DNA of 64,000 nucleotides from positions 19,157,360-19,221,359 of the forward strand of contig NC_043019.1 of NCBI RefSeq assembly GCF_006345805.1. Direction: 5' to 3'. Below, piece by piece: positions 7,121-61,335 of this stretch. Within the stretch, counting starts at the first letter, position 1. Each line of letters begins with the position of its first letter. The notes under the pieces were generated by a model. That model did not search any database and was not told the origin of the DNA. It saw only the letters and a program-made list of their open reading frames with translations. Source of the DNA: Octopus sinensis (taxonomy: Eukaryota). The translations under genes and the position numbers were made by a program.

Positions 7121-8050
7121 CATCTATCTCATAGTGACCGGTTCAGAAGGCTTTGGCAGGCATGAGGATAGTGACTGCTTGTTGTCAGCTGAGAGTTCAG
7201 ATGACCATTTTTTTTCATCCTCTTGATGTACTTATTCCTTGTCCTCTGTATCTGTGTGTGTGAGTGCAGAAAAGGTAAAACGACGAGCTTCTTAGATGAG
7301 TCCATTAGAAAGGTTCTCAACAATATGAGACAATAGGCTAAGGTCATTGAGAGAACTTGGTAACCAGAAAACAAATAAATTTTTTACAAAATGAAAATGA
7401 AAGAGGTGAGGCTGAAACCCGTGAAGACAGGACGATACGCAAATCGCCTGACCAGCTGGCTTTAGGATGACTGGCCAAATAAAGTTGTGTAAGGGAAAGA
7501 CGGGCATGATAGGATGGTCTACGACCGCTGACTTCTATAGGCATGATACATGAAAATCTATCTACGCAGAGAGAGAGAGAGAGACGGCGATGTAATTAAG
7601 CAAAACAAAGCGCAATGTGCATCAAAAGCCATTTACTAAATTTGTCATTTAATTTCATGGATGAAATTGAAACTTTTATAATGAACTGGGAATTTTTTTG
7701 TTTCGGCTGAAGACATTGCTTCCGTTGGTTGGCCAGACAGTCCGTTCTTAGACTATTTGGAGACAGTATTGATTTTTTTAGAGATGTCGCTTCTCTCTAC
7801 CTTGTCGAATATCGGATGAAGGACAAAAAGTCATGAAGCAGCTAAAATCGACAAATATATGCAAAATATTCAGGAACTGCGCATTTTCTTTCCTGTCATA
7901 AACTATAAATCTCGCTTTCCTACAGTTTTTTTTTATCAGCATCAGAATTATTAAATAAATAATCCAAACAAGTTATATAAACCTGAGCATTTCCCGCCCC
8001 CACTTCGACCGTTAAATGAAAGCGTTTATCTCTTGCGAATTCTTACTTAC

Positions 8051-8130: not shown

Positions 8131-9350
8131 GCATATCTCTCTCTCTCTCTCTCTCTCTTTATCTATCTATCGTGTATATATATATGTATGTGTATATATA
8201 TATACACACATACATACATATATATATATATATACATACAAACATATATATATATGTTGCCCTTAACAACAAAAACATCATATACGCGTATTAAGAAAAA
8301 AAAACAAATAAGAAAAAAAAAACAAATACACGTAAAACAAATAAAAAACCATGATTCAATAAATAAATTTAAATAAAACGTTTGTCATTTTACGTTCAAA
8401 TTACGTAAATATCAGACCCGCTTTTTATACTTTCCCTTCTTCCCATTTTTGTGGACAAGATTATTTATATTTATTAATAATATTAATTTAGATATTTATA
8501 ACTGAATTACACCATCAGTTGATAAACTTGGGAAAACATTTTAAAAAAATTGAAAAAAAAATCTTTAGGAATATCTCGAAAAAAATAGTCTTGTGGGGGA
8601 AAATAACAATTTGAAACTTTCGGTAAGTTAAATTCTTGAAAGCTTGAATATTTTTCGTATCCTTCAACATATTATCATTACAACGATCATAATTATTGAC
8701 AAATATTGTAACAATTAGCAAACTTTCCGTAGAGTTTTTATAAAGATATTTTTGCTTTTTTTTTTTTTATTTCTAGTCTTGATTTAAAAATTATTTTCGC
8801 TTCCTAATCTTTCATCTCTGAGAAGTGAGGACGCATGAAAGAGGGCTATTATCGTTTAACCCCACATAAATTACTCTATGCACAAAGACATTGTATCTGT
8901 GACCATTCCATCCGTTTGTTCAAATAGTTATCTAATGTCTTCCTTTTTTTTTTTTAGAATCCAGGTAGAAAAGTCACAAGAGTTTTGTCCGGGTGAGGGG
9001 GGAGGGGCTCCGAGCGGGTTCTGTCCGGTGGGGTTTGTCCGGGGTGGGGTCCAAAGGTGGGGGGGGGGTTGTCCGGATCTCATAAATTTGTTGTGATTTT
9101 ATTACCGGTCACCACAAATTAATTGTGACTTTTTTTACCAGCCAAAAATTGTGACTTTATTACTGTGACTTTTTTCCCATTGCTTTTATTATCGGTCACC
9201 TTTTTTCTTAGTAAACGAATGCTAGCAATTTAGATTTAAAAGATACAATAATTTCAGTTTTCATTTCATTTGCTTATTTCTAAAAAAAAATCAGATTTAG
9301 TTAATGACTAAAAATAAAATTGTGACTTTAAAAACGAATTTACTAAACTA

Positions 9351-15205: not shown

Positions 15206-15242
15206 ATGGGTGTCGATGAAAATAACATGGATTTTATAGAAG
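15206..15242 (+). CDS. Host gene coding exon 1 (exon 15125-15242; start codon at 15206): MGVDENNMDFIE
   Basis: Acceptor ttttag|15125, in-frame TGA at 15167-15169, ATG context aaatATGg, donor GAAG|GTATTT in phase 1, which joins exon 2 in frame. Confidence 0.6.
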
Positions 15243-15836
15243 GTATTTGTTTGGCTTGCTTTGCCTCTTTCTACCGTATCGTTCTTTTATTCACTTGACA
15301 CTCGTTATCTTTTACTTGTTTCAATCATTGGACTGTGACCATACTGGAGCACTACCTTCAACAATTTTAGTGAACACAATCAGCTCCAGGACTCTTTTTT
15401 AAAGTTTGGTACTTATTCTATCAGTTTCTTTTGCCAAACTGTTAAGTTACAAGGATGTAGACAGCGCATCGCTGGTTGTCAGGTGGAATGAGGACACACA
15501 CACAGACACACACACGCATATGCAACAGGCTACTTTCACTTTCTCTCTACCAAATCCACTCACAAGGCTTTGGTCGGCTTTATGTTTTTCATTTATTTTT
15601 CCCCCACATTTTCTACTATAACCCTGGGCTGAACAGTTTTGTGAATAGATTTGGTAGAGGGAAACTGAAACAAAATTATTCTCTCTATTTATAATATATC
15701 TGTCTCGTCCATGACTAGCATGGAAGGCAGATGTTAAATGATGATGATGATGATGATGATGATATATGTGTGTGTTTGTAACCCTTGAGTCTCTACTTAT
15801 TATTTAAGCTGATTTGCAATAACTGTGATGGTGAAG

Positions 15837-15874
<38 letters not shown>

Positions 15875-15899
15875 CTGTGCATGCACAGGTAAACATAAA

Positions 15900-16250
15900 C
15901 ACGCATATACCCATCATCATCACCATCACCATCATCACTTTCACATCATTTTCCCTCCTACCGCTTTCTCCTCTCTTTTCCTCCTCTTCCTCTTCCCACT
16001 ACTGCTTCTTCCTCCCTCCTCTTCCCCTCCCTCTTTCCTCTTGTGTCTCCTTTTCCTACTCTCTCCCTCTTCCTCTCTTTTCTTCCTCCCTCTTCCCTCT
16101 TCCTCCTACTGCTTCTTCCTCCCTCTTCCTCATGCTGCTTCCTCCTACTCCTCCCTCCTCCTCATGTTGCTTCCTCCCGCTTCCTTCTCTTGCTTTCTCC
16201 TCCTCCCTTCTCTCTCCTCCACTCCTCACACACCCTCTTCTCTCCCCTTC
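15900..16250. repeat. Low-complexity CAT/CCT/CTT simple repeat
   Basis: catcatcac and cttcctcct runs; these give rise to spurious ORFs. Confidence 0.9.
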
Positions 16251-17031
16251 TGTTTTGGCAACAGGAAGTGGGGCACTGGGTGTAGAAAATTCCACCAGAG
16301 ACGAGCATGGGGAAGTGATAAAAATGGGTGTTAAAATGATCTTTCCTCTCTTATCTTGTACTGCTTCCAGCCTGTGGCCATTCTGGGGCACCACCTTGAA
16401 GAATTTTAGTCAAATGAATCGGCCCCAGTTCTTATTTTTTTTTAAAGCTTGGTACTTATTCTATCGGTCTCTATTCCCTAACTGTTAAGTTATGGGGATG
16501 TAAACACACCAACACCAGTTGTCAAGTGGTGGACGAGTGTTTGGAGACAAGCACAGACACAAAGCCCCCCCCCACACACACACACACATAACCCCTTTGG
16601 TTATGAATGGGATTGCACCTACAAAGTTCCCCTCCAAGGTTGTTTGTGGAAGGCCAGCAGTCACCCATGCATACCAGCCTCCCCTCTTCACATCACCGAT
16701 GTTATCCAAGAGAAAGGCAAAGGCCAATTCAGCATCGGTAATGTCGCAACTTATTTCTACAGCTGAGTGAACTGGAACAACATGAAATGAAAGTGTCTTG
16801 CTCAAGAACACAACACACAGCCTGGTCTGGGAATCGAACACACAACCTCATGATTGTAAGCCCAATGCTCTAACCAATGAGCCATGCATGGAACTTTGGG
16901 CAAATGTCTTCTACTGTAGCCACAGGATGACTAAGGCCTTGGTAGTGGGATTGATGGATGGAACCGGAAAGAAACCAGAAGATATATATGTATATAACAA
17001 AGTAAAGTTGTAAGGTACCACACAAGTAGAA

Positions 17032-17431
17032 ATATATATGAAAGAAGGTTTGAAAATGCAATTTTAAAGATGTTTATTCACTTGACCGGTTTCACTTTTT
17101 TAGAAAAAGATTGTCAAAAGTAAAATGTAAAGCTTTGTATAAGCTTTGTTGTGTTAAGTTCTGGTTCTCACAAAAGTATTAAAATACATATTTACATTCT
17201 TTGATAATAATAAGAAAATGTTAAAAACAGTTTACAAGGAAATGTCTGAGAAAATATTTCTTATTATTATCAAAGACTGTATAGATGTATTTTAATACTT
17301 TTGTGACAACCAGGACTTAACACAACAAAGCTTTACATTTTACTTTTGACAATTATTTTTCTAAAAAAGTGAAACCGGTCAAGTGAATAAACATCTTTAA
17401 AATTGCATTTTCAAACCTTCTTTCATATATA
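17032..17431. mobile_element. Foldback/MITE-like long inverted repeat
   Basis: atatatatgaaagaaggtttgaaaatgcaattttaaagatgtttattcacttgaccggtttcac... is mirrored by ...gtgaaaccggtcaagtgaataaacatctttaaaattgcattttcaaaccttctttcatatata. Arms are ~180-190 bp, the spacer ~35 bp, with TA-rich flanks. Confidence 0.85.
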
Positions 17432-17829
17432 CATATATAAACACACACTCACGATGGGCTTCTTTCTGCAGTCAATGTAGCAAAGGAAAGTTGTAAGGTT
17501 GTGTTCTCTTGTTTTTCCCCAAATTGTGTAGAGATGATTGGTGCTGGTGATCTCTTGTGCCTTCATCGCTTCCAAAGCCAGCCTGTTCTTTAGCTATTTC
17601 TTGTTGAAAGGATGGTTTCAAATGTTCTAGGATTATGACAAGAAGTATTTTGCTTGTATGTAGTATCAGAGTGATTGTTCAATAATTTTCACACATAAGT
17701 ATATTAGTGGTGGAAGAGGGAGGTAGGCAGGGCTATAAAAGGAGTTGATAAGTAGCTGTACAAGCCATGTATAGGGGTACAGTCAGTAGGGTGGGAGTCA
17801 GCCATGAGTACAGTGATGAATTTAGTGTA

Positions 17830-18200
17830 CAAGTAGGAGTTCACCAGGGGACACCTCTTATATATTGATGATCTCACTTTTATAGCAGAATCTTTAACAG
17901 AATTGCAAAAGATATTCCAGGTGTAGAAGCAAAGCCTGGACTCAAAGGGCCTTAAAGTTCATCTGGTAAATATCAAGGTTGTTGTTAGCAAGAAAGCAGA
18001 TTAAAGTGTCTTTCCAGCTGGTAGATGGCCCTGCTCAATATATTGGAAAGATGTTGGAAGGAATTCCATTCATTGCACCCAGTGCAAGCTATGGACACAC
18101 AAGAGGTGCAGTGGAATGACAGGTAGATTAACAGAGAAATTTGTCTCTGAATGTAACTGACATGAAGTGAAAATAAACACCAAGGACATGCGAGGGGGAA
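17830..18200 (+). mobile_element. RTE-clade LINE fragment (PHD-in-RT family)
   Basis: ggtagatggccctgctcaata...gaattccattcattgcacccagtgcaagctatggacacacaagaggtgcagtgga, homologous to 2780-3240 and 43550-43700. Confidence 0.8.
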
Positions 18201-18378
18201 ACAGGAAATGTCCTCTGTGGGACAAACCTGTTATAGTTCAGGCTTCTGCTACTTGATATGACCCTCAGGCATCTTGATGCCACTTGAACCGACCCTCAGG
18301 CATCAGTCTACCGACCAACAGTAGGGATTCTGCTGAGTGGTGTTGTGCAGTGCTTCTCCCTGTTTCTCAATTTTTGCA

Positions 18379-19008
18379 ATGGCTGAAATGAATGAACAGT
18401 GTGCTTCCATGAAATTCTGTTTTCTGCTGGGGAAAACAGCAGCCAAAATAGTTCTCATGCTTCAAACAGCCTACAACGATGCTACCATGAGCAAAACACA
18501 AGTTTATGGTTTTCAAGCTTTAGGAATGATCACTTGAAAATTCATGAATTATCTTGGAGGACCATCACTGAATAAGTGACAAACTTGTTGATACGACTGA
18601 TATGTCCTGGAGCTCCTGCCAACGAATTTTGAGTGAAAAATTGCGAATGAAAATACTTGCAGCAAAATTTGTGTCTCACTTGCTCACAGAAGATAAAAAG
18701 CAGTCATGACTGAATGTGTGTCATGAATTGAAAGAACAATTGGAAGTTGATCTGGGCCATTCTTCAAAGGTGACAAACGCTGGTGCTTTGGAATTTTCAG
18801 ATGTAGAAGAAGTGAAGAAAGAGATGATGGAGGAAGTGAAAGGTATCACTTTGCAAGAGTTCCAGGACTGATTCTAATGAAACACGCATGGACCGATGCA
18901 CTGCTTCAAATGGAGAATACTTTGAAGGTGATAAAAGCATAAAGACGTGAAACTAAGTGAATGAAACAATACTGCCAAATTCTGGTTTGTTTTGGATAAC
19001 CCCTCGTA
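18379..19008 (+). mobile_element. Internally deleted mariner element
   Basis: MAEMNEQCASMKFCFLLGKTAAK...TMSKTQVY (HTH), AAKFVSHLLTED, and a 3' TIR-like end ttggataacccctcgta. Confidence 0.8.
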
Positions 19009-19559
19009 CAGGAGGAATTCAATTTTCTCAGATGCCCAGATGTGCTACTGTAGTGGAGACACATGGCTACCCAGCCAGAGGGAAGAACAAGACAAAGAGA
19101 GAGAAAGTGGAAGACAGCAAGGGTGCAAGAGAGAAATAGTGGCAAAGTGCCAGGGCATACTGACAAGGGGCAGGGATCAAAATGTAGACGGGATGGTAGA
19201 GTAAAGGAAGAGAAAGATAGATAGGGGCAAGTACCAGGACATAGCGTTAAGGTGTACAGAAGTCATAAGTGGCAGGATACTAGCAAAGAAGCGTGAGTAG
19301 GGAGTAGGTGTGGGGAATGCAGTGACTGGTGAGAACCTGACCATATAGAGGGGTGGGGGACTATGGGATAGCCATGATGCAGTGAGGACAAGATTGGGGA
19401 GTGAGAGATAATCAATCATATTGCATGAAAGAGGAAATTTGAGGGAAAGAAAAGATGCGGATTGGGAGAAGAGATATCGTTTGGTTTGTCGGGGGTCGGG
19501 GTGTGTGGGCAGAACACAACACTCACTGACGTGGGTGGGTCTTCTCGAGAATCTCATAT

Positions 19560-19790
19560 TGCCAGACATCTCGGTCCATTGTCATTTCTTCCACGAGGCC
19601 CAACATCCTGAGATCAGTCCTTACCACTTCATCTCCTGTCTTTCTGGGTTTCCCTCTTCCTCCTTCCCCAGGTACCATCCACTTCCAGTGATCGGCACTT
19701 CTTTATACCACTGCCCTCATTCATATGCATCACATGTCCAAACCAATGCAGTCTTCTCTCTTGCATGCTGCACTTGATTCCTCTTATGCT
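19560..19790 (-). mobile_element. RTE LINE 3' coding fragment
   Basis: Minus strand QERRLHWFGHVMHM...KKCRSLEVDG, homologous to 44100-44300. Confidence 0.75.
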
Positions 19791-20819
19791 GATCCAGTCA
19801 CACAGTTGAACTTATGCATTATCATTATCTCAGCATCCTCTACTTTTCCATGCTTTCATGAGTCTGACAAGAGTATTTTGGGGCAGAGTTTTCTATGGTT
19901 AGATGTCTTTCCTCTTACCAACTTCCACCTGTTTCCAGCTGAGGCCATAAACTCCAAATCTATCAAGCAAAAAAATAACCTGGGTACGCTTATGTGGTGA
20001 ACTGTAAACAAATGACACTGGAAAAAGCCTTTTGTTTACAAAGACCAAGGAGTGTGTTGAGACAATGTTCAGAAGTCTGGACAGGCTTTCACAGTGGGCT
20101 GATTGCAAATGACAGTGAAACCACTGTTTATAAATCAGTAAGCAAATTGCATGTGTAGATCATCATCATCATCATTTTCCATGCTGGCATGGGTTGGACA
20201 GTTTGACTGAAAAATGGTAAGCTGGGAGGTGGGGGGCTGTACCAGGTTCCAATCTGATTTGGTAAGGTTTCTACAGCTGGATGACCTTCCTAATGCCAAC
20301 CACTCTGAGAGTGTAGTGGGTGTTTTTTTATGAACCATTGACCTGACACCGGCATCAGCCACAACTACGGTCTCACTTGGCTGGACAGGTCTACACAAGC
20401 ACGGTATATCACCAAAGGTCTTGGTCACTTGTCACCGCCTGCATGGGGCCCAACACTCAAGTGGTGCCTTTTACGTGCCACCAGCATGGGTGCCAGTCAG
20501 ATGGCACTGGCTTTGGCCACCACTATGATTTCACTTGGCTTGAGAGGTTTTTCAGAAGCACAGCACATTGCCCAATAATTGAAGAGAAATATAAAATCAC
20601 CCACAAAAGACTCAGGCACCCATATACATACATCATCATCATATAACATCCGTTTGCCATGCTGGCATGAGTTGGATGGTTTAACAGCAACTGCAACAGA
20701 CTCCATTATCTGTTTTGGCATGGTTTCTATAGCTGGATAGCTTTCTTAATGCCAACCACTTTACAGAATGTAGTTGGTACTTTTTGTGTGACCCCTTCTC
20801 CAACTGGGTCATCAAGCAT

Positions 20820-21027
20820 CTTATTTCCCACAAGGGGCTAAACAAGGACACACAGAAGGATTAAGTTGATTACATCAACCCCAGTGTGTAACTGGTACTT
20901 AATTTATTGACCCTGAAAGGATGAAAGGCAAAGTCGACCTTGGCGGAATTTGAACTCAGAACATAATGGCAGATGAAATACTGCTAAGCATTTGGCCCGG
21001 CATGCTAACGTTTCTGCCAGCTCGCCA
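20820..21027 (-). mobile_element. tRNA-derived SINE with Meta/MESC-like central domain
   Basis: Minus strand has a tRNA-like head (gagttcaaattccgcc) followed by aaggtcgactttgcctttcatcctttcagggtcaataaattaagtacc. The domain name is from recall only. Confidence 0.7.
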
Positions 21028-21149
21028 CACTTATCAAGCATCTTGCAAGACAAAATCCCCTCAGCTGGGAGTGGGGGGGGGGGGTAGTATTGATGGAGTA
21101 GTGGCTTTGTGCTACTTGGAAAAGAAAAGTGAAACTTGAAAAAGTTGAG

Positions 21150-22540
21150 GGCTTGGCCAAAGAAGATGTCTATCAACCACACTGCTTGATTGGTAGAGGA
21201 CTTTGAACACTCGATGGCATTCCAGATTCCAAGTGCCTTGACTTGGTCTTTAGCTGGTCCATGGCTGCTCTCTGTCAAAGAGACAACCTATGGAAAAGTG
21301 AGTCTGACAAATAGGAACCATATCTGTTTACCATCAAAGAGTTTCTGGGAATGTAGCAGTCTTTTTGCACAACTGCATCTTGTCCTTATCAGCCATAGCA
21401 TTCCCAGTCCTCCATTCATTTGGCAGCAAATAAAGCACTGCCCCTGGCAAAATGTGGAACAGGAGCTGTTCCATCTTGATCAGATATGAGCTGGGGCAAG
21501 ACATGATGGTCATCAGGTAGTAATAAATGATGGAGATGATGTAAGTGTTCACCTCCTCTGCCCAATTTTTCAGAGTTAGTTTTTTTATCAATTCATTTCT
21601 GTGTTAGGATTGGCCACTCTGCTTGTTGATCCAATTATCTATCCAGTGCTCCATAGTACAAGTGGATGGCATGAAGATGGTTCTTTCACATCCTAGTTTT
21701 TATGGGATTCCCATCAATATCTCTTGTTTCTGTGGCAGTGGCTCTAGAGTCAATACATAAAGAAGAGACAAGAATTGATAACCTTGACAGACCAAGTGTA
21801 TGTAGTTGAATGGTTCAGACAGGTGACCATTCATCCTAATCACTGAGCAGATGGGACTGAAATTAGCTGCAGTGAAGACAGTCATCATGTATTAATGGTT
21901 GACTCTATCAAATGTGTGCTAAGAGGTTTCCAAACAAGTCTGAAATGTAAAAATAAAAGTCTTAGGCAGTACACCATCCAAGACAGGTGATTTACCCACT
22001 GTACAGCCAGCCATTAATTCCTATATTTCTGAAGCTGTTATTGACTTTTTTTGCGACACTCCACTTCTCTAGACAAGAGTCATGGCAGGTTGTTAAGGTA
22101 AGTGCTGAAATCTGTTCTGTGATTAGGCTTACCACTCATCCTGAACAGTTAAGTACTGTTGAAAAGCTGCACACATCTAATCAGGTTTAAATAACATACC
22201 CATCATGCTCTACCAATGACCAAATTGAGGTCTTGTTACCACATTGCATGCAGGCCACTTGGGCCCATCAGATGGCTTTTGTTTTCTCGTGTCTTAGCTC
22301 TGACAACACAGCTTTCATGCTTTGCATTGATAAATTGGTCAATGGCTAATCTCACCACAAACACATGAGTTATGATGCCTTTCCTATGTGCCTCCTCTAA
22401 GTTTCTTACTAGATTTCCCTGTAATCTATTTTTCTCTTGCTATTTCCTTACTAAACCTTATTGATTCCACTTTAATCACCCTTGTGTCCTCATCAATGCC
22501 CACTTAACTACTTTGTTAATCCAGTCTTTGTAAGTTTGGT
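21150..22540 (-). mobile_element. Tx1/L1-clade LINE RT remnant
   Basis: Minus strand ESCVVRAK (linker), SVIRMNGHLSEPF...VCQGYQFLSLLYVLTLEPL (cf. VNG.LS..F...SVRQGCPLSPLLYVLALEPL), and KLTLKNWAEEVNTYIISIIYY (cf. LSLKGRAEV.N.YI). Confidence 0.7.
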
Positions 22541-23589
22541 GCACTAGAAGTGACACATTCAGTTTCCAGTAATCAAATCCCTACCTACAGAGCCTATCTA
22601 GGCCAAACATACAGATCACAAATTTATGGTCTGAGCAGTTGACAATTTTAAATTGTGGACAAGCTTTGCTATCTTTATGTACTGGCCTACAGATTATTCT
22701 GTTTCTGAGGGTCCTGCACTCTACATTTTTTTAACTCTCTTTCATATCAATGCTAAGAGGCCTGGGGAACAGTTACACCCGAGGGCCTTTAATACTCTCA
22801 GTCTGCCCCTGTCAGTGAGGTTTCAAAATAATAATTGGAGGAAACTTAAATAAAAAAGTTTTTAACCTCATTGAATTTTATTCATATTTAATTCACTTTG
22901 GATGCACTCCTTAAAAGTATTTTCAATAAAAGTTTAATCATTCTCATTATACAAGCCTATATCAAATACATGTAATATACATTTTCCCTGCCTACCCACC
23001 CAGTCCAGTCCCCTGTCTCATTTCACCTATACTCATCCCACCCACTGTACCTCAAGGGGTATGTCCTGACACACATTCATCTCTATCTTTCTCTCCCTTC
23101 TCCTCTAACTGGGATATCCTTGTACCTGTTCTACAGCCACTATCTCTATCACTCTATTATTCTTTTAACCCCTCATTTACTGGCACAAAGCCACCTCTCT
23201 CGATACTACTCCCCCTCCCAGTCAAGGGGCCTTTGCCTTGTCTTGCAAGTCACTTGGTCACCCCACTGGTGCTGGTGCCACATAAAAAGCACCCGGTACA
23301 CCCTGTAAAGTGATTGGCTTTAGGAAAGGCATCTAGCCATAGCAATCTTGTCACAACAACCTCCTCGCTTGCCAGTTCTTGTCAAACCATCCAATTCATG
23401 CCAGCATGAAAAGAATGTGCAATGGGGATTATGGCGATGATGATGATGGTGATGATAATAGATTATATATCATTGTTAGTTTATTTCTTTTAAAATGGCA
23501 TGGTTATTGATGGCACAGGTATACAAGTGTGTGTGTGTGTGCATGTGTATGTGTATTTGTGGTGAGGTCCTGCGATTTGGTGTCCCTTC

Positions 23590-25215
23590 ATAAAATTATT
23601 TGTGTAATCTGGAGGGATGGTGCAATGCTTAAGGACTGGAAGGATGCAGTTATTTTTCGTCTCTATAAAGGAAAGGGAGCCAGAGTAGGGTGTGGCAACT
23701 ACAGAGGTATTGATCTACTATCAGCTGCTGGCAAGGTTCTGGCAAATATTCTTGAATGGTTGTCTTGTAAATGATGTTCTATCAGAATATCTATATGGTT
23801 TCTGATCTGGAAGAGGAACAATGGATATGATTTTCACAGCAAGACAGATGCAGGAGAAGTGCTATGAGCAGAATATGGATCTTGTCCAGGTATTCATTGA
23901 CTTAACCAAGGCGTTGATTCTGTGGCCTCCAAATGGGAAATATTTGGCAAACCTGGATGTCTGGATCCTTTTGTATCAATAATCAAATCATTTCATGATG
24001 GGATGGATGCTTGGGTCAGTGTTGGTGGTGGCATGGCAGGACCCATTCCTCTAGAGAATGGTGTCAAGCAGGGTGACATCCTTGCCCCAACTCTCTTTTC
24101 TCTGTACTTTGTTGCTACTCTTACTCATGCTTTTGCTGTGGACAGCTCTCCCGGGGTATATGTTAGGTATCGATCTTCTGGCCGTCTTTTTTAACCTGCA
24201 TCAATTTGCTGCCAATTCCAAAGTTTGTCAGTCTGTTATTCTTGACCTCATGACCTCCTTTATGCAGGTGACTGTTACTTAGTCACTCATACAGTGGATG
24301 ACATGCAAATACTTGTGAATCATATTTCTGCTTCTTGCAAGGCATTTGGACTCAGCATTAGCTTGGACAAAACTGTTGTAATGTTCCAATCTGCACCAGG
24401 AGGTCCATATGTGGAATCAGCTATCTTGATTGAAGGAACAATACTGAAAGTGGTAGACAAGTTTGTCTACCTGAGCAGCACGCTCAGCTGTTCTTGCTCC
24501 CTGGATGAAGAATTATCTTTCAGGCTGCAGAGAGCAACTGATTCCTTCAGATCTCTTGAGTCTTGTGTCTGGTCCCAGCATGGCATCACAAGGTGAAAAA
24601 AAATTGCTGTGTACCATGCATGTGTATTGACATCACTCTTTTATTCATGTAAGACATGGACCCTTTACAAATGTTATGTAAGGGTCCTTGAACGCTTCCA
24701 TCAGAGATGTATGAGACACATTCTGAATGTTGGCTGGACCCTAAAACTCCAGGCACACAGATCCTGAGGACAGCTGATATCTTGAGTATTGAGGCGATGG
24801 TGCACAAATGAAGTTACATTGGACTGGACACTTTGTTAGAATGAATGATAGCAGGCTCCCTAAACAGATGCTGTATGGGGAATTTGTGAATTAGTGGTAA
24901 GAGTCCCTGGCAGAAGCCAACACTGATTTAAGGACTGTGTAAAGACCTCATTAAAGGCCTGTGAAATGTGTGTGTGTTGTGGGAGGCCCTGACTGGGACA
25001 GTAATGCTTGTCATAGCCACTGAAGCAGGTAAAGGAGGGAGTTGATATCTTTGAAAGAGCATGTATTCTTCATGAAGAATTTAAGCGTGCTGCCCGAAAA
25101 TGCACTGCTAGTGTAATGAATGGGAAAAGCTTTGTCTGCAACATTTGAAGTTGTGTATGTTTGTCAAGAGCAGGGCTCGTTAGTCACCAGTGGAGCTGCA
25201 AGTGTAAAGTATAAG
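23590..25215 (+). mobile_element. RTE-BovB-like LINE, 5'-truncated, with terminal C2H2/C2HC finger
   Basis: DWKDAVI..LYKGKG...CGNYRGI.LLS.AGKVLA; GRGTMDMIFTARQMQEKC.EQN; NGVKQGDILAPTLFSLYF; GLSISLDKTVVM; a 3' FVCNI...CLSRAGLVSHQ segment. Frameshifted. Confidence 0.92.
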
Positions 25216-25843
25216 GTAGTCTTGGGTGCACAATGATCCTAAAGGTGAGTAATGATTTTTCTTGGTCATGAGTGGATGGCCATCATGAGTGTATGCATAT
25301 GTATATATGCATATGTATATATGCATATGTATATATGTATATGTATATATGTATATGTCTATGTCCATTCCTGTGTTTGTCTATAGTCTAAAAAATTGAT
25401 GTAGCTATATTAGTGTGACTTGGAGCAGTTTAACAAAGAGAGATTAATAAATGATGTCCTAGATTGAAGAATAGGTTCTGGATATAAATCAATTATAAAA
25501 AAACTTGAAGGCGTAGCTCCAGCATGGCAGAAAATCCAGTGACTGGAAACTTTAAATGAATAAAGACTATAAACACACAGGCATGCACACATGCAAGCAC
25601 ACGCATGCATGCACGTGTGCACACACAATCATTCAAATGATATAATTCTTTAACAACTGCCAGAAATTATAATTGCTTGTGGCAATAAAATAGTTTAAAT
25701 TTAAGAATCCTTAACTTTGTCTTGTCTTCTTATACGTATTATCAACAATGGAGGTTATAAAGTTATGAATCTCACTCTCTTAAAAAGTATTATGCAAAAC
25801 AGCTTCATGCCATATTAGTGTATCTCTTCATTCCTTCATTCAG

Positions 25844-51558: not shown

Positions 51559-53399
51559 TTTGGGTATGGTAGATGAGTTCAGCAAAAATTTAGATTCAGA
51601 TGAGTATGGTACTTAAGTTGAGGCACCAGAATTTAGTACGGTATTATCCATACAATTTCAAAGTAAGGTGATTAAAGTCAAATTAAGCAACAAGGATATC
51701 CAGAGGTAATCCTGTATGATCGTTTCATGCAACTCCATTTAATTGACCATTGCAATCATTACATCAATTTAAAATGCAGAGCAGTCCTCAGCTGCACTAA
51801 GACATAGAATTTAATTAAATTAGAACAGATGGACACATTAGTATAATTATACCTAAAATCTCCAAGAAGTTAAGGAGATAGACAAAGAACATGCTGGCTT
51901 CACTCCAGCATAGAAATTACTAAGTTATCAAGAAGATATACATTGTTACAGACTCTGCCTGTCACTGATTTTTGTTTGTTTTTATGGGGTCAGTTTTAAT
52001 TTATAGACTAGTTTATCAAATCCTTGTATATCTAAGGCTGGGAGAACAAAGGACAGTATTTGTTAATGGTAGGACTGGGGGAGAAGACAGACATCATACT
52101 TGGTTTAGTCATAAAAATCAAGATTTACTAGAAGCAATATCATGAGGTTAGGTAACGGAAAACTTAAAACAAGATGTCAACTGACAATTAAGGGGGTCGC
52201 CCACTGGCAGACCATTGATAATGAAACAGGGGGAGTCTTATCATGTAGTACCATAGTTAAATATTTTAAACAATGTTGCTATATTGTATATAGTTAAAAT
52301 TTAGGGTTATTCAGAGGATTATCAAGAAGAATATTATAACAAAAGGATAGAAATTTATGAATACTTTTGAGTATATACCAAACTTTTACCACAATAAAGG
52401 GAGGAAAAGAAATTATATAGAAATAGCTTAATATTCATACATATTGTGCACTTAAATACTAGCTCATCGGATGGTATCTGTGAATATTGATTAATTAGTA
52501 TATACTGGTATTAATAAATGAGTATGTTAATTATATGTTAATGAAACTATAATCTAAGCAGTTTTTTATAAGTAGTGAATATACCAGTATAGTTTTATAT
52601 AAACTAAGTATGAATTTATAAAGATACAAAAACTAGATTAATTTTATAAATAAAGGCTAATTATAAAATAATAAAGAAATAAAATAAAATAATTATTTTA
52701 TAATTAGCCTTTTTCTGTCTGCTCCCTCAGCCCTATGAGAGAATACATACACAAAACAACACATACCAATCTGCACACATACATACATACACACACACAC
52801 ACACCCTGTTGATGTTGTTGAAATTCCAATGAAGAGGCCTTGGATCTAAGTTAGAAACCAATTCTTTCTCCATTGGCAAAAAATTTTGAAATAAAACTAA
52901 ATAATGACACACACACATTTATTTATTTGTATATGTATATGTGTATGTGTGTGCGTGTTTGCATACTTACAGACATATCTATGTATATATGTTTGTATGT
53001 TTGTACACACACATATACATGCGCATATATATATATATATACATGGTCTGTCCCTACTCATACACTCCTCATTCTATTCAAATTAGTTTGTGTTTTAAAT
53101 AGGATTTGATTGGTAGACAATAGTCACATGACTGGTCTTAGAAATTTTTGACTATTCTCTACCAATCAAACCCTATTCTAAACATATACTAACTTGTGCC
53201 ATGAACTCCCTATAAAAACAGGGGAAACTTTAAACCACAGCAAAGCAGCTGCGACATAAGCCACGTCTTTCTATTTGAACTTTTTGAAAATCAGTGGAAA
53301 CCGTGAAACCGGTTAAAGCTTCAAATATTTTATTAAAAAATATTTTAACCGCATTTTCAACTTCTATTTTTTCTATACATACATACATACATATATAAA

Positions 53400-53830
53400 T
53401 ATATACACATACATACATATATACATATACATACATATATTTATGGCTGGCCCCTCGTTATCGAGTATGGCCATTGCACGAAGCTCAACTGCTACTGGTG
53501 CTATGATCGAATGTGACTTTTTAGCCCAGCTAAAGATGTACAATGTCTTGTACAGAATTGGCAACTAAAACCTTTACTGGTAATAGCCGGCTATAGTTGT
53601 AACTGGGCTTCATGTACCTTTGCATGTCGTTTAAGTCCTCCTGCCGAATTACACTCTCTTCCACATGCCCGACAGATATGATTAGTATGGTGTGTTACAC
53701 CACCACCAGTGGCCAGGTTGTCACTCATCTGTCTCGTTTTATGACTACGAAGATGACTCATGAGTCCAGCTTTACTGAGGCAGGGTTTTGCACAGACATT
53801 GCATGTCAGAATCAAAGGAAGACCCTTCCC
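53400..53830 (-). mobile_element. 3' end of an RTE-like LINE encoding three tandem C2H2 fingers
   Basis: CNVCAKPCLSKAGLMSHLRSH and CRACGRECNSAGGLKRHAKVH (ORF 53591-53815); in the same frame past one TAG, CQFCTRHCTSLAGLKSHIRS*H. A short 3'UTR and microsatellite tail follow. Finger 1 resembles the terminal finger at 25130-25200. Confidence 0.7.
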
Positions 53831-56506
53831 TTCTGGAAGTGTAACAGCGATGCCCTTCCTGACATCCCTCCTTACTTTCTCATGTATGTATATATATATG
53901 TAACTTTTTCCACTAATGGGTATATGTCAATTAGTGTGTTGAGTAAAGCATGTTCACAGTGTTGGGCTACCTGGTGTCATCCATGGTTGGGGTAAATTTC
54001 TGGTGGATTTACTTCAGGAATTCCACAGTGTTAGTTGAGATAATAATAACTGATGAAGGAAACAGAAGATGGATTTGGCATTAGTCTTAGACTAATCTTC
54101 TGTGTCCTCCATTGATTATTATTATCAATACACACACACACACACAGATATAGAGAGAGATGATCTCATGTTGCAGTGGTTGTGTTGTAAGCAAGGCTCA
54201 TAGCCTATTCCAGTGGATGTGACTGAACAAAAAGCACCAGGCTCCAAACACTACTTCGCAGTTGAGTATCGTTTCCTTCTTCAAAACAATCTAATTCGAT
54301 GAAATTGTTTTTAGCAGCAGACTGTTCTCACTTAATTCAGAAAGAGGACAATATTAATTTTGGGATGAGATAATCTCATCTTTGAACATTTATCTACACC
54401 ATATTGCAATCAGTTTCATTCAGGTGTATGGCTGACAGGGCGAGATTCAAACTAGAAACCATTATCCACTCTGTCATTGATACACTTACATCGACTCACT
54501 ACCCTTAATTTAAATCTCACCTGCTACTAAGCATAAGAATGAAAGACCTGACGAAGAACAGGGGTCAACTGAAATGTAGCGTAATAAAATATCAAAAAAC
54601 AATTAAGTTCTAAAAATGAGGATGGAAGTCTCAAATATGATATTCATACTAGCAATAACTTATACTAGTAAGACCATGTGAGCTGTGGAATGGATCCTTC
54701 AACGGTATCAAACATATTACTTGCACATCTCCAGCTACAAGAAAAGAAAATATATAGAAAGCTGAAAAGGATTCAAAAAGAAAGTAAAAAATGGGGGAAA
54801 TTGCAGAACATCCCATGATTACCGTCTTTAAGGAGATTATTTCACAGTTAAAGGATTAGGAATAGGAAAGATGTCTAATTTTAAAACAATTGCTTTAACA
54901 AAAGCCAAAATAAAAATCTAGGAAAATAAATATAAAACAGGGGTTTTCCAGACTTGAACCAACACACCACATTGCCTCTCACCTTGTATCTGTAGGACTT
55001 GGTTCTTGATAACAATCTCTCAAGGCTGAAGAATATGTCTGTCTGGTAAGAGATATTGTTCAATATTGAATGAACTGATGAACATGCCAGACATCCCATG
55101 CTGCTTTTAATGTGTTCAGAGTCCAGATCTTATGACTAAAGTTGACCTACACAACTAATGTGCCCTTGACTGAAACTGATTACTAGAATGGCTTCTCCAG
55201 ACCCTGTATACAATTGAACCCAGCAATGTAAGATAACAGGTAATTTGTTAAATCTACAGTTTTGCTCCAGCTGACAGTAGTGAGATGCTTTTTTCCCCCA
55301 TGGTGTGACTACTTTCAACTTGAGGGAGTGGCCCAATTAAGGGTTAAATAATCATTACTTTGGAAACCTTGAAAAGCCACTGACAGGATCTGGTTGGTTG
55401 TCCAGTATTCCGGCCGTCTCTGGACATTGTAGTTTGTTCATTCATTTTACATCTGTTTTTCCATGCTTTCATGTGTTGGACAAATATGTCCTTCCTGGCG
55501 CTGGCACTCACCTGGTTTTCCAGTAAATGATTAAATGTTTTGTTGACAGGTGAAGTTGACAACACCACCATCTGCTGCACTGTCACACAACTGATTACAG
55601 ATGTAAACAAACATATAGACATTAATGAATATGCATGTGTGTGTGCACACTCACACCATTATCATCATAATATTTGTATGGGTCAGACAGAATTCTTTGA
55701 GGCAGATTTTTTATGGCTGTTGCCAATCCTCACCTGTTTCTAAGCAAGGTAATACTCTTCCATGGCTTGACATTTTTCTCCCAGAAGATTGGTAATGATG
55801 AAGTACACCACTTGTATGATGGTGAAGCTCATCTACAGCCATCATGTGAAGACTCGCAGACACAATCAGACACACATGCACACACACACACACACACACA
55901 CTTGCAGGTATTTTCTTTCAGTTTCCATCATTCAAATCTACCTACAAGGCTTTCTTAGAAGACACCTGCCCAAGGTGGGTCTAAATACAAAACTATGTGG
56001 TTGACAAATGAACTTCTGGATCACATTTTGCTGTGTTTGATTGCGTTTTAATTTCGTCCACAACAATGAACCAGTCGTAGGCATTAACAAGAACAGTAAG
56101 ACCCTCAGACCTGGTGCCATGGGCTATTTGTCCTGGTTCTTGGCTTAATTAGTTCAAATCTTGGCATGACCTACTTAGGTGCTTACGTGGTAGATTTAAT
56201 CCATTCTCTACTTCAGTGCTCCCATCCAGCACCTTTGATAACCTTGGTGAAATCTATTGTTTTGTAAGTATTTGAGCTTGGTTTCCAATTTGAGGATACT
56301 ATCCTCTAACCCTTCCATAAGTTTGAGGGACCTCATAAAAGTCATGGGTTCTACTTTTTCTTCTGAGAAAGATTAGAAATTTAAAAAAAGTCAGAATTGT
56401 AAATAGAAATATTTGAAGTCATGACTGTCACAATGTCTCACTATGATATTGTGTGCTTAGTGAAAAAGAACTAATCGATCTTATGTGTGGACTTCTTTGA
56501 CTACAG

Positions 56507-56692
56507 AGCCAAGAGAAGAACCTAAAAGTACAGATAATGTCAGTGTGCAAACTGATAAGATTGGTGATGTTCCCAGTACACCGAAGACACAAACTGATGT
56601 CCAGAAGCAAGCAAAACCAGGTGCTTCACCAATCCATATCAATGTGACCATGCCTCACATCTGTCAACCGGAAACAGCCAAACCCACTCCAG
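56507..56692 (+). CDS. Host gene coding exon 4: (E)PREEPKSTDNVSVQTDKIGDVPSTPKTQTDVQKQAKPGASPIHINVTMPHICQPETAKPTP
   Basis: Acceptor ttctttgactaCAG|, donor CCAG|GTAAGT, 186 nt (62 codons), phase 1/1. Confidence 0.88.
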
Positions 56693-57323
56693 GTAAGTAA
56701 ATCAGTGATCTCTCTCTCTCTCTGATTGTGTCAACCATCAACTGACTCCTGAGAGTCACTGGTCTCTCTGATTGTATATCTGCTTGTCTGTGAATTTGAT
56801 TACCTCTTTAACCATCTGACCATCAACTCGGACTGTCTGTCTGACATCAGCTCTTAAAGAAATGTTGAGGGTTGTCTATGGTTCGTTTCACTTTCACTTC
56901 TGCTGTATACTTCTTGTCCTGTCAGAAACCCAGCCACCTATTTGCCCCTTTATTGAGTAGAATGATGGTCAAGAGTGTTCCTGCAATGGCAATACTGTCC
57001 TTTCCTTGCCTCCCACTCCTACAGAGACCTGGCAATTAGAGTGTCGTTAGTGATATTTGGCCCCATATCACTTCTGACTAAGCAGTTCTATTATCAGAAC
57101 AATTCAAGTTAAAACCATCTCATTTTTTTCTTATTTAAAATGGAAGAAGTGATTTTTGAGGAAGATTTAGCTGCTCTTTCTAAAAAGAGAGGTTAATCAT
57201 ACAAAGAAGCTTTTGTCGGCTTATGGGAGTTATGCAATTAAACATGAATATTGGATAAAAAGACACATTGAAGAGAAGGGAATTCCTGTTGGAGACCCCA
57301 GGTTTGATAGAATTATAACAGAA

Positions 57324-59300
57324 CAGTGATTCCCAACCAAATACATGATCCCTTGGGGTTTTCAGAAGATAGTATTTAGGGTCCATGAGCTGAGTTTAAA
57401 TGGCTGCAGTGCAAAATGTCTAATTACTCACTATAAGGTTCATAAAAAATATGCCTAGAACTTTATACAGTTCTAGTACAAGGTTAACTTTGACAGGGTC
57501 ACAGCACAGAATGGAAGACTTCTGGATATTCAGTAACTGGATCTGTGTTTGTTTGATTTCTGAATTTTGACACTTAATTGGATTAGTAAAGGTATTAATG
57601 ATATAGCATGGTTTGAAACTGTTGCTATGACTATTGTATATTGTGAATGTGGCATATGACATGTCATCTTGTGCATGCTCATCCAGAAATTGCTTACAAG
57701 TGATACTAATATAAAAAAAAAATACCATGTGTGAACATGAGACATAATGTTTTGACTGGATAATGTTTTAACGGATCACATGGAAACACCAACTATTTGA
57801 ATAAACTCTGTATATTTATGAATTATTCTCTTCATAACAGTTTTAACATCAATAAAAACACTTTATATGTCTGACCATGGAAACACATCGAAATGAAAAG
57901 ATAGTGAGAACTTAGGTGTCAGATGCATCTTGGTTAAAGGAAACAGATTCTGGTTTAAGTTTTATGAAATGAATAACTTGTAAATCTTGTGACAAGTCCA
58001 TATCTTTTGCATTTCTATACAGCTACCATAAATTTGATAAAAAGCCACATTGTGTTGTGTTTTATGAAGCTTTGTCCAATGACAGCATGAAGCCGACCAA
58101 GTGTGGCTGACACAAAGGAAACAAGAACCTATTGAATATTTTCCAAGATTGCAAAAACTACTTTTACAACAAAAGTCAATGGAAAAACTTGTAGCTGACT
58201 GATAATAAAAATACTATTTACATTGTATGATGTGTCTCTTTTAACAGCAATGAGTGGAAACTACTCACAAACAGCAAAGGAACTGATTCTGCTGCCAAAG
58301 CAATTGCCACCAGAATACATGAAAACAAAAGAGGAAGCAATTATGATATGATTCCATTACCAAACAGCACTAAAGCAGCATTAATAAAAGACACGTCTGA
58401 TATTCATAAACATTAGTAAAAAGAGTAATTAAAAGTGAAAAGTATTCCTTATGTTTAGATGAAAGTCCACAGATTTCTAATTGTGACATTTTGGCTTGCA
58501 TTCCTGGTATGGATTTTAAAATGGAATTAACAAACAGTTTCTGCTTTGCCAATCATTGCCACCAAATAACAACTGGTGAGTCTATTTTTAATGGTCTGAA
58601 CAATTTTGCAATAAAAAGATAAAATATCAACTGTCAAATGAATTCAATGCTGCATCCATAAAGAAACACGAGTAGTGAGAAATATGACAAGAAAATTGAA
58701 AATTGAAAATGGAGGAGGCAGAGAAGATTTGTGAGGAGGTGGACAGTGTCCATGGACAACTACTCTCACATTTTCAGGTGTGCTGGTTGTCTTATGGTAA
58801 AGTACATACCTGTATATTTAAGTTGCATGATGAAAGAAGACAATCCAATTTTATTCTGAATTACTAAATTGTTCAGGCCATTAAATGTTATGGCAAGCTG
58901 TGGTAGAATATAGGGTTGACATTTTGACATATCTGAGTCAACAAGAGAAATCCATAATGATTTAATGATTTTAAAATGGAAGTGGAAGTCAATTATGAAA
59001 TTAGATTTATGGTTTGAACAGCTGCAGATTGGTGAGTTTGAATCCTTCCTGGAACTTTCCTGCAACATCTGAAAATGACTTCTCTGTAGAAATTAGAACC
59101 CTTTTCATTAAACACTCACAAAATTTGGGGATTATTTTCCTTTCCCAGATTCTAGTAATGATTTGTCTAGGGGTCCATTATATGTAAATGGAAAAACCAT
59201 AACCTTCGAATGAAGAAAACAGTATTGTTGGATTTTTACAAGATACCTCAGTTATGTGTAGTATGATTTAGCAGACTTGGTTCCATATAAAGAACGAGTC
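57324..59300 (+). mobile_element. hAT (Charlie/Buster-like) transposon remnant
   Basis: 5' end cagtgattcccaacc (Charlie-type TIR); AKELIL...IPLPNST and SLCLDESPQISNCDIL (cf. EELILPA, IPLSN.T, FSLQLDESTD). The 3' end was not located. Confidence 0.65.
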
Positions 59301-59896
59301 TCATTATTAATTTTCTTCCTAATTAGTTGTGCTATATTTCTCACTATTATGTTTGTAACCCAATCTATCAGTTTGGTGCCTGTAGTGACATCTGCATCTC
59401 CTTTTCTCTCATAAAATTGATGAGTCTCTGATGTTACTCATTAGGAATGAATTCTTCCTTTACTATCAGATTAATTACATGACTAACTCATGCACGTTCT
59501 GCTTCATCTGATATTTTCAATATCTCAGCATCAGTCCCATGATGGTCTGGCTGATTTTTCGATCTTCATACTCTTAATGGCCATTTCACATGTATAACCA
59601 TCAACTCCAAGAGCTCGGCCATCCATTGAGTCTACTTGGGGTAGATCTTCTCTCATCTCAGCACTCTCTTAAATTGGTAACCACTTGTAATAGCATTTTC
59701 GTGCTTCTTTCTTACTAGCATCGGTGAGATCATGTCACTAACATTACACATTTATTTCATTTCAGCTGCATCTGATTCTTCATTGTAAGCAGGAATATTT
59801 CAGGTCATGCTTGTCACTACTTCACACTGTCTCTCCTTTTAAAGCTAAAAAATGTGACTAGTCAAAAAACATTAATTAATGCTTCTTTAATTTCAG

Positions 59897-60019
59897 CTGC
59901 ACCACAGCCAGACTCTGCAGCAGAGCAAAAAAAGAAGCCTGAACTTAAGGAAATTGGTGTGCAATATGATAATATGGATGCTGGCACAAAGGAAGATGTG
60001 CCCCCTGAGACCACTCCAG
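59897..60019 (+). CDS. Host gene coding exon 5 (repeat copy A): (A)APQPDSAAEQKKKPELKEIGVQYDNMDAGTKEDVPPETTP
   Basis: Acceptor ttctttaatttCAG|, donor CCAG|GTAGCT, 123 nt, phase 1/1. Confidence 0.85.
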
Positions 60020-60294
60020 GTAGCTAAGCTATTGAGTTCCCTATTTGACTAAAACCTTGTATATCCATCAGTTTGTGTGATTACCTCTTTGATCCTCTGA
60101 CTGCCAGTTCAAACCATTTGACCACCTCTCCAATGGACTGTCAATCTATTTGTTTGTCTGACATCAGCTTCATTGTCTGTCTGTCTGATCAATTGTCTGT
60201 TTGCCTGCATATCTGCCTGCCAGTCTTATTGTCTAACAGTCAAATTACTCTGAATAAACTAATTAATGCTATGTGTAATCTTCTTTAATTTCAG

Positions 60295-60417
60295 CTGCAC
60301 CACAGCCAGACTCTGCAGCAGAGAAACCAAAGAAGCCTGATCTTAAGGAAATCGGTGTGCAAACTGCTGACATGGATGCTGACAAAAAGGAAGATGTGCC
60401 CCCTGAGACCACTCCAG
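60295..60417 (+). CDS. Host gene coding exon 6 (repeat copy B): (A)APQPDSAAEKPKKPDLKEIGVQTADMDADKKEDVPPETTP
   Basis: Acceptor ttctttaatttCAG|, donor CCAG|GTAACT, 123 nt, phase 1/1. Confidence 0.88.
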
Positions 60418-60690
60418 GTAACTAAGCTGCTGAGTTCTCTATTTGACTAAAAACCTTGTATATCCATCAGTTTGTGTGATTACCTCTTTGATCCTCCGAC
60501 TGCCAGCTCAAATCATTTGACTGCCTGTCCAATGGACTATCAATCTATTTGTCTGTCTGTCTGATCAATTATCTGTTTGCCTGCCATTCCTGCTGCCAGT
60601 CTTATTGTCTAACAATCTAATTACTCTTTGTAACACATTTTGTTCCTGAATAAACTAATTAATGCTATGTGTAATCTTCTTTAATTTCAG

Positions 60691-60840
60691 CTGCACCACA
60701 GCCAGACTCTGCAGCAGAGAAACCAAAGAAACCTAAACTTTTTAAGGAAATCGGTGTGCAAACTGCTGACATGGATGCTGACAAAAAGGAAGATGTACAC
60801 CCACCATTAACAGTTCAACTTATCATAGAAGAGAGTCCAG
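60691..60840 (+). CDS. Host gene coding exon 7 (repeat copy C): (A)APQPDSAAEKPKKPKLFKEIGVQTADMDADKKEDVHPPLTVQLIIEESP
   Basis: Acceptor ttctttaatttCAG|, donor CCAG|GTAACT, 150 nt, phase 1/1. The gene continues beyond this exon. Confidence 0.88.
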
Positions 60841-61335
60841 GTAACTAAACTGCCGAGTTCTCTATTTGACTAAAACCTTGTATACCCATCAGTTTGTGTG
60901 ATTGCCTCTTTGATCATCCAACTGCCAAATCATTTGACTACCTGTCCAACAGACTATCAATCTATTTGTCTGATTGTCTGATTGATTATCTGTTTGCCTG
61001 CATGTCTGCCAGCCAGCCTCATTGTCTAACAATCTAATTACTCTTTGTAACACATTTTGTTCCTAAATAGTGTTATTTGCTTATTGCTTATGATGAAAAA
61101 ATATAGAAAATGGTTGTTATTTCTTTCAAACTTTACTCTTGCAACCTGTTTGATGATATTTTGAAATTTACCTATTTTTTTCCTGTGGGAAAAACAAGTG
61201 TATTTATTACATTTTCATTCACATAAGATCAGAAAGAATCAACAGATGAATCAAATTTAACAGGTTCGTATGGTTAGGTTATATAAAAATTCAAAAGTGA
61301 GTGGAGGTTTATTTTAAATATACAATTGAACTCAC

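Follow-up and report, generated by a model that had tools for sequence, protein, structure and literature searches.

The first seven coding exons of a modular gene lie on the + strand of a 64,000-nucleotide (nt) stretch of the Octopus sinensis genome (NC_043019.1, positions 19,157,360 to 19,221,359; hereafter the window, a sub-range of the O. sinensis locus on CM016881.1). We consider this a real gene whose product may be a multivalent client of LC8 (DYNLL), with [GS]-[VM]-Q-T cores of the G-I-Q-V-D/S-V-Q-T subclass; we give this reading a probability of about one-half. What the analysis shows is how the gene is organized, that its modules are paralogs, that sequence is conserved among three octopod samples, that the cores fit the LC8 motif, and that the chain is predicted to be disordered.

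All seven exons have canonical AG acceptors and GT donors, and every junction falls in phase 1 (between the first and second bases of a codon). The internal exons, six in all, measure 84, 258, 186, 123, 123, and 150 nt, each divisible by 3, and the total of 961 nt comprises 320 codons plus 1 nt, starting from an ATG in good context (Table 1). Six exons were located from the sequence around their motifs; exon 2 was located only after a matching protein had been found. That protein, XP_036368543.1 ("proteoglycan 4-like," O. sinensis), was the only one of 1.84 billion representative proteins to match when all were scanned exhaustively with HMMER; it contains the query (the spliced chain) exactly, at residues 41 to 320, and the spliced translation of the seven exons is exactly its residues 1 to 320. 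Splice sites and this identity confirm the original prediction, made from the sequence alone, of seven phase 1 exons encoding about 320 amino acids (aa) of a P-, E-, and K-rich chain (P, 14.1%; E, 9.7%; K, 10.3%), and its six motif strings all occur on the + strand, in exons 3 to 7. The predicted length is right for the window, but the chain is not complete: exon 7 lacks a stop codon, and the O. sinensis RefSeq model, of 619 aa, has five further coding sequence (CDS) exons past the 3' end of the window. Nor is the gene unrecognized, as had been claimed: RefSeq models already exist in two Octopus species under an uninformative name, so the gene is better described as misnamed. The Octopus bimaculoides ortholog (current RefSeq model XP_052831867.1, 968 aa) is 85% identical and has the same architecture.

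Table 1. Features of the window. Positions are window positions; window coordinate = coordinate in the O. sinensis locus (L001) + 5205.
Feature	Positions	Strand	Description
CDS exon 1	15206-15242	+	ATG, MGVDENNMDFIE + 1 nt; donor GT at 15243
CDS exon 2	25844-25927	+	EKEMNEILDTAISDMLGRIKQSLEDEIP; predicted amphipathic helix
CDS exon 3	32661-32918	+	Long module; anchor DLGVQTD at 32735-32755, then YQINIQEHARPACSPLHINLSLPPHTCP
Ultra-conserved block	45706-46122	+	Inside intron 3; paralog of O. bimaculoides annotated terminal exon (GCHVMSCPAVCPRRMKC...)
CDS exon 4	56507-56692	+	Module; NVSVQTD at 56536-56556, PKTQTD at 56581-56598, then PIHINVTMPHICQ
399-bp tandem repeat, three copies	59877-61069	+	Each copy comprises one short-module exon and its intron
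CDS exon 5	59897-60019	+	Short module; EIGVQYD at 59950-59970
CDS exon 6	60295-60417	+	Short module; EIGVQTAD at 60348-60371
CDS exon 7	60691-60840	+	Short module; EIGVQTAD at 60747-60770; tail HPPLTVQLIIEESP; no stop codon

Protein and module-profile searches found no relatives outside octopods, with none from squid, cuttlefish, or other molluscs. A profile of 14 modules identified a third related sequence, an exon 3 ortholog on a 985-nt genomic contig from run SRR11869391, whose genome is more divergent and octopod-like. As far as databases reach, these searches support a gene restricted to octopods, in agreement with the earlier suggestion that it is lineage specific. A literature search on the accession, the RefSeq name, and LC8/DYNLL clients in octopus or cephalopods returned nothing relevant.

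After an N-terminal helix, the protein is a chain of related modules, one per exon, ranging from 9 in O. sinensis to 14 in O. bimaculoides. Long modules consist of a K/P-rich lead-in, a core of the form φ-[GS]-V-Q-T-[DE] (φ, hydrophobic residue), about 10 further residues, and then a second conserved element, Y-x-I-N-I-Q-E-H-x-R-P-x-x-S-P-L-H-I-N-x-x-x-P-P-H-x-C; among long modules, PPHxC is almost invariant, as is the isoleucine of the H-I-N strand. Short modules (exons 5 to 7) have been reduced to the lead-in and GVQT core followed by an acidic tail, the remainder of the long module having been lost. The five extra modules of O. bimaculoides are C-terminal; four contain G-M-Q-T and the last contains G-V-Q-A, and each also has a second element resembling D-S-K-M-I-Q-T. 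Cores are spaced 41 to 75 residues apart. The modules have diverged to 24 to 46% identity (exon 4 versus exon 3, 36% over 64 aa) with the Q unchanged throughout: core V and Q are the sole invariant positions in the alignment of the 9 O. sinensis modules, and Q is the sole invariant position in that of the 14 O. bimaculoides modules, where the following T is ≥90% conserved. That short modules keep the GVQT core after shedding two-thirds of their length points to the core as an autonomous unit.

Because all internal exons are symmetric (phase 1), gain, loss, or skipping of an exon keeps the frame, which supports the earlier idea that valency changes exon by exon. Exons 5 to 7 each belong to one copy of a 399-bp tandem repeat whose introns are as similar between copies as its exons. 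Repeat copies are 95 to 98% identical within a species, compared to 86 to 90% for positional orthologs (window 59877-61069 versus 27512-28470 of the O. bimaculoides locus, L002), and the intron that follows exon 7 is 94% identical to its ortholog in the other species. Higher identity within species than between orthologs, next to an orthologous flank, argues for a three-copy array that is common to both species and has been homogenized; thus, the array is in concerted evolution by gene conversion or unequal exchange. An architecture of one motif per symmetric exon is supported, and duplication at the exon level and gene conversion are clearly in evidence.

The motifs are predicted to lie in a disordered region of an intrinsically disordered protein. 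AlphaFold2 gave the full-length protein a mean predicted local distance difference test (pLDDT) score of 32, with only the N-terminal helix above 50 (residues 13 to 38, encoded by exon 2; pLDDT, 57 to 61), and its composition places it beyond the charge-hydropathy boundary, among disordered chains; both support the disordered chain proposed originally. No meaningful match was found in Pfam (E up to 10), NCBIfam, or PDB sequences, and the Pfam result agrees with the earlier remark that no globular domain could be recognized. By eye, the exon 2 helix (NEILDTAISDMLGRIKQSL) has the hydrophobic pattern φ-φ-x-x-φ-φ-x-x-φ-φ-x-x-φ. Such patterns resemble those of docking helices, for example, in AKAPs, and this helix could be a dimerization or docking element.

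The LC8 motif consists of eight residues within a disordered region, with a TQT-type anchor or variant in which the Q at position 0 is most conserved; hydrogen bonding by the residue at −4 and a strand-breaking residue at +2 are favored, whereas a bulky side chain at −2 or any proline preceding the anchor is disfavored (PMC6607443). For an anchor of the T/V/I-Q-T/V type, with Q at position 0, the O. sinensis protein offers nine cores ([GS]VQ[TY]) and that of O. bimaculoides 14 ([GS][VM]Q[TA]). At the anchor, the motifs fit this consensus, as had been predicted, and the invariance of Q alone among the 14 modules matches the published hierarchy with Q at position 0 (PMC6607443). Several cores closely resemble validated binders (PMC6607443, Table S4): DNVSVQTD and ETVSVQTE are near SON RCVSVQTD and MAST1 RHQSVQTE; EDLGVQTD is near DNMT3A KDLGIQVD and gephyrin EDKGVQCE; and KEIGVQTA is near DLGAP1 LSIGIQVD and 53BP1 NNIGIQTM.

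We scored the cores with a position-specific scoring matrix (PSSM), a log-odds matrix built for this analysis from 79 published LC8 binders and distinct from LC8Pred. Leave-one-out scores of the binders centered on a median of 14.0, with the 10th percentile at 9.8; the median for TQT-containing non-binders was 9.9. Seven of the nine [GS]VQ[TY] cores scored 9.2 to 13.4 bits (GDMSVQTD, 13.4; EDLGVQTD, 12.2; ETVSVQTE, 12.1; DNVSVQTD, 11.5; KDLSVQTG, 9.8; and KEIGVQTA, which occurs twice, 9.2 each), and the PKTQTD site, as STPKTQTD, scored 11.1 bits. Cores of the three O. bimaculoides short modules (KEI[SG]VQTD) scored 12.3 to 12.5. Five 8-mer windows of the 619-aa protein reached at least the binders' 10th percentile; 2000 composition-preserving shuffles averaged 0.31 such windows and never exceeded 3. 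The core scores lie in the low to middle range of binders and overlap those of non-binders. We regard the fit to the LC8 motif as genuine but not discriminating. All modules are paralogs, so their motifs are not independent events; three of them sit in a recent 399-bp tandem repeat. Caspase site, RHIM, TRAF, SxIP, RVxF, and B56 readings of the core and strands were judged by eye to be inconsistent across modules.

At the level of the motif, the octopus cores are closest to the non-TQT "GIQVD/SVQT" subclass found in GKAP/DLGAP1, nNOS, DNMT3A, gephyrin, SON, MAST1, and ZFPM1. The octamers of that subclass (LSIGIQVD, QSVGVQVE, KDTGIQVD, KDLGIQVD, EDKGVQCE, RCVSVQTD, RHQSVQTE, and SDKGVQTP) are near-identical to those of octopus (EDLGVQTD, DNVSVQTD, KEIGVQTA, ETVSVQTE, KDLSVQTG, and GDMSVQTD); the likeness goes no further than the motif, since these proteins have one or two sites in unrelated architectures. 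In function, the octopus protein would resemble ASCIZ/ATMIN, a transcription factor for LC8 and a sensor of its concentration, which has a long disordered region with many LC8 motifs of mixed strengths and linker lengths. ASCIZ has 7 LC8 motifs in Drosophila and 11 to 16 in human and forms dynamic duplexes with LC8 dimers (PMC10046861); the candidate valency of 9 to 14 in octopus is comparable to the 7 to 16 sites of ASCIZ (PMC10046861), and one human ASCIZ site, ISTGVQVN, has a GVQ-type anchor like those of octopus (PMC6607443, Table S4). However, ASCIZ has N-terminal C2H2 zinc fingers, whereas the octopus protein has neither a zinc finger nor any Pfam domain; ASCIZ anchors are mostly TQT, whereas those of octopus are nearly all [GS]VQT, one motif per exon; and the two have no sequence similarity, as our searches gave octopod matches only. 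Yeast Nup159, Chica/FAM83D, RSP3, and Bassoon also have LC8 sites (three to five) in a disordered segment, with LC8 dimers stacked between chains, but these arrays are short and closely spaced (that of Nup159 is rigid), in contrast to the 9 to 14 widely spaced candidate sites of octopus, and none of these proteins is homologous to it.

We infer LC8 binding, duplex formation, and any cellular role. In the most likely mechanism, LC8 dimers would clamp equivalent motifs of two chains, each added as a strand to the LC8 β-sheet, so that the two are zipped together as a duplex carrying many rungs of LC8. Given the wide spacing of the motifs, the duplex would be expected to be dynamic and heterogeneous; work on ASCIZ likewise predicts a dynamic, heterogeneous ladder when linkers are long (PMC10046861). 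Exon duplication, gene conversion, or exon skipping would alter the number of sites, with the frame unbroken. If its motifs do bind LC8, few known LC8 clients would be more multivalent than the octopus protein, which has up to 14 candidate sites, and it would be a case in which exon duplication and gene conversion can be seen to set the number of sites. It would then offer a natural system for studying the effects of valency and linker length on assemblies of LC8 with disordered proteins, and an example of a lineage-specific gene joining a universal hub.

Comparison of the two Octopus species bears on both the reality of the gene and the function of the motifs. Frames, splice sites, and phase are retained in both. 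All nine VQT cores are present in O. bimaculoides, where O. sinensis EIGVQYD is EISVQTD. Two extra TQ-type sites are lost there (PKTQTD to TQN and KITQVD to TQA). Pooled dN/dS (the ratio of non-synonymous to synonymous substitution rates) is 0.73, a value that includes 60 exon 11 codons aligned out of frame; by exon, it is 0.52 for exon 2, 0.17 for exon 3, 0.40 for exon 8, and 0.29 for exon 10. In nucleotide identity, exons 1 and 3 alone rise above their introns; exon 1 is 97% identical between species, compared to 86% for its flanks. Constraint is strong in a 50-codon core of exon 3 (KLVKVLEDLGVQTDA...LPPH), which has 8 synonymous and 2 non-synonymous differences (I/V and V/A only) among three octopod samples, giving a dN/dS of 0.07 and establishing that the gene encodes a protein. 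Outside this core, the exon 3 flanks have indels.

Several of our results weigh against LC8 as the partner. Core scores reach only the 9th to 39th percentile of the 79 binders and overlap those of TQT-containing non-binders (median, 9.9). The two remaining cores score poorly: KEIGVQYD at 6.3 bits and GGVGVQTV, with G at −4 and V at +2, at 4.6 bits. V at −1 is uncommon, being found in 6 of the 79 binders; the C-terminal modules have M there, which none of the 79 has. The sole true TQT motif, PKTQTD, has P at −3 and reads TQN in O. bimaculoides; although it was originally listed as an LC8 site, it is probably nonfunctional. Motif prediction has its own limit, as LC8Pred is about 78% accurate (PMC6607443). 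Between the two Octopus species, the conservation of anchor residues is only marginally higher, with changes at 1 of 27 anchor positions and at 85 of 535 others (P = 0.06), a comparison with little power at such a short evolutionary distance; the constancy of Q among paralogs is the stronger argument. Exons 4 to 7 and 9 have dN/dS ratios of about 1 or higher (1.7 for exon 4), and exons 4 to 7 are conserved no better than their introns. Finally, constraint on exon 3 extends over about 50 residues, far beyond the needs of an 8-residue motif, and LC8 binding leaves the second conserved element of long modules unexplained.

These last points bring forward the best alternative, which we consider somewhat less probable than LC8 binding: that the gene is real, but the strands of its modules (GVQT, Y.INIQEH, and PLHINL) fold together or bind a non-LC8 partner, for example, as a small β-hairpin or sheet unit, in a cross-β assembly, or through His/Cys metal or redox chemistry at PPHxC, so that the likeness to LC8 motifs is coincidental. 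The extent and strength of exon 3 constraint would suit such a unit, as would the near-invariance of PPHxC and of the H-I-N strand I among long modules and the M-Q-T of the C-terminal modules, which has no match among the 79 binders. In two segments (Y.INIQEH and PL.IN.), hydrophobic residues alternate with polar ones, and AlphaFold2 places low-confidence hairpins there. When the exon 3 module was modeled with an 18-row paralog alignment, the highest pLDDT (73 to 84) was at residues 41 to 70, away from the VQT core, where it was lower; however, overall pLDDT was 65, no secondary structure was assigned, and no confident fold was predicted. Also against this alternative, no relative was found in Pfam or PDB; the short modules drop the hairpin part and retain GVQT; and Q is the single invariant residue of the family, as expected for LC8. 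The two readings are compatible rather than exclusive. LC8 sites often adjoin self-association or second-partner elements.

A more ambitious version of the LC8 reading, which we think unlikely, makes the protein an octopod LC8 "sponge" or scaffold tunable from 1 to 14 sites, each in its own symmetric phase 1 exon. Duplication and gene conversion would shift its valency over evolution, and exon skipping would do so within the animal; an alternative terminal exon in intron 3 (see below) might yield a one-site isoform. The second constrained element of the long module, of 30 residues, would recruit a further partner beside each LC8 rung.

It is very improbable that the exons are prediction artifacts in repeat-rich DNA rather than parts of a functional protein-coding gene. 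The weak conservation of exons 2 and 4 to 7, which do not exceed flanking intron, the dN/dS of about 1 or higher in exons 4 to 7, and the non-canonical junctions of the RefSeq models outside the window could be taken that way; against this stand the retention of the frame, all AG/GT sites, and phase 1 in two species, the 8 synonymous changes and low dN/dS of the exon 3 core in three samples, and the ancient paralogy of exons 3 and 4, both of which are still open and spliceable at 36% identity. Least credible of all is kinship with secreted, mucin-like proteoglycan 4 (lubricin), as the database name says, which draws on the RefSeq names and a low-complexity P-, K-, E-, and T-rich composition only: lubricin has a signal peptide, somatomedin-B (SMB) and hemopexin domains, and KEPAPTT repeats, whereas the octopus protein has none of these, matches no Pfam domain (those two included), begins with an acidic N terminus (MGVDENNMDFIEEKEMNE) lacking a hydrophobic signal sequence, and has no homolog outside octopods among the 1.84 billion representative proteins. 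Composition alone explains "proteoglycan 4(-like)" as an artifact of naming; our analysis corrects this misleading label and draws attention to two constrained elements in octopus genomes, the module core of 50 residues and an ultra-conserved intronic block of 417 nt.

That block, in intron 3 (Table 1), is the most conserved in the window: its 417 nt are 98.8% identical to O. bimaculoides (about 0.89 over all aligned bases), with 100% identity over 45750-45950. Its identity to the annotated terminal exon of XP_052831867.1 is 73%, and its translation, GCHVMSCPAVCPRRMKCSYREK...NQK*, is followed by an AATAAA about 30 nt past the stop. No canonical AG acceptor was found in frame with GCHVMSC...; use of the canonical acceptor at 45813-14 after exon 3 would give a protein that terminates in ...STA-GG*. 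The block may be an alternative terminal exon with its 3' untranslated region, or a site of intronic polyadenylation. An RNA folding z score of +1.43 and the lack of an Rfam match make a structured RNA unlikely.

Past the 3' end of the window, the O. sinensis RefSeq model stops where a TAG stands in place of the Q in a GMQT core (L001 91722), and it omits at least two further module exons of the C-terminal type that are present in the DNA (C-terminal module regions, including the TAG-bearing core and the omitted exons: L001 91671-91877, 77748-77963, and 90284-90514). The TAG and the omitted exons account for the model being shorter than that of O. bimaculoides; probably, the true O. sinensis protein is longer than the model, or its C-terminal part is decaying in this species. 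The RefSeq exon 10/11 junction (L001 62348/69236) is non-canonical, pairing a GT donor with a CC acceptor to give RDISDS; a canonical CCAG|GT...CAG| pair six bases off would give RDSPDS, matching the "...P|" ending of all other exons. Similarly, the last junction of the O. bimaculoides model (L002 39993/42357) has an intron without AG. For the true 3' end, the candidates are the tail in RefSeq (...CCCHK), a canonical splice that would yield ...PGG*, and a hydrophobic tail.

The O. bimaculoides ortholog has PF15257 (DUF4590) gene neighbors on both sides (L002 1-1314 and 45059-52422). No module-like sequence was found in these neighboring genes; the C terminus of the upstream neighbor contains an LC8-like string, SERGTQVIV.

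Four other blocks in the window that do not look coding are ≥97% identical to O. bimaculoides and are candidate conserved noncoding elements: 26049-26566, which starts 120 nt after exon 2; 7812-7962; 8333-8727; and 57360-57494. Introns 1 and 2 contain retrotransposon-like open reading frames (ORFs) at 23511-24764 (+) and 27935-30355 (−), the latter including a 396-aa ORF with a YMDD reverse transcriptase motif. Intron 3 contains an imperfect CA-rich simple repeat of about 3.8 kb (39135-42926), which translates as HTHTHTC... and has a GC skew of −0.5 and an AT skew of +0.48.

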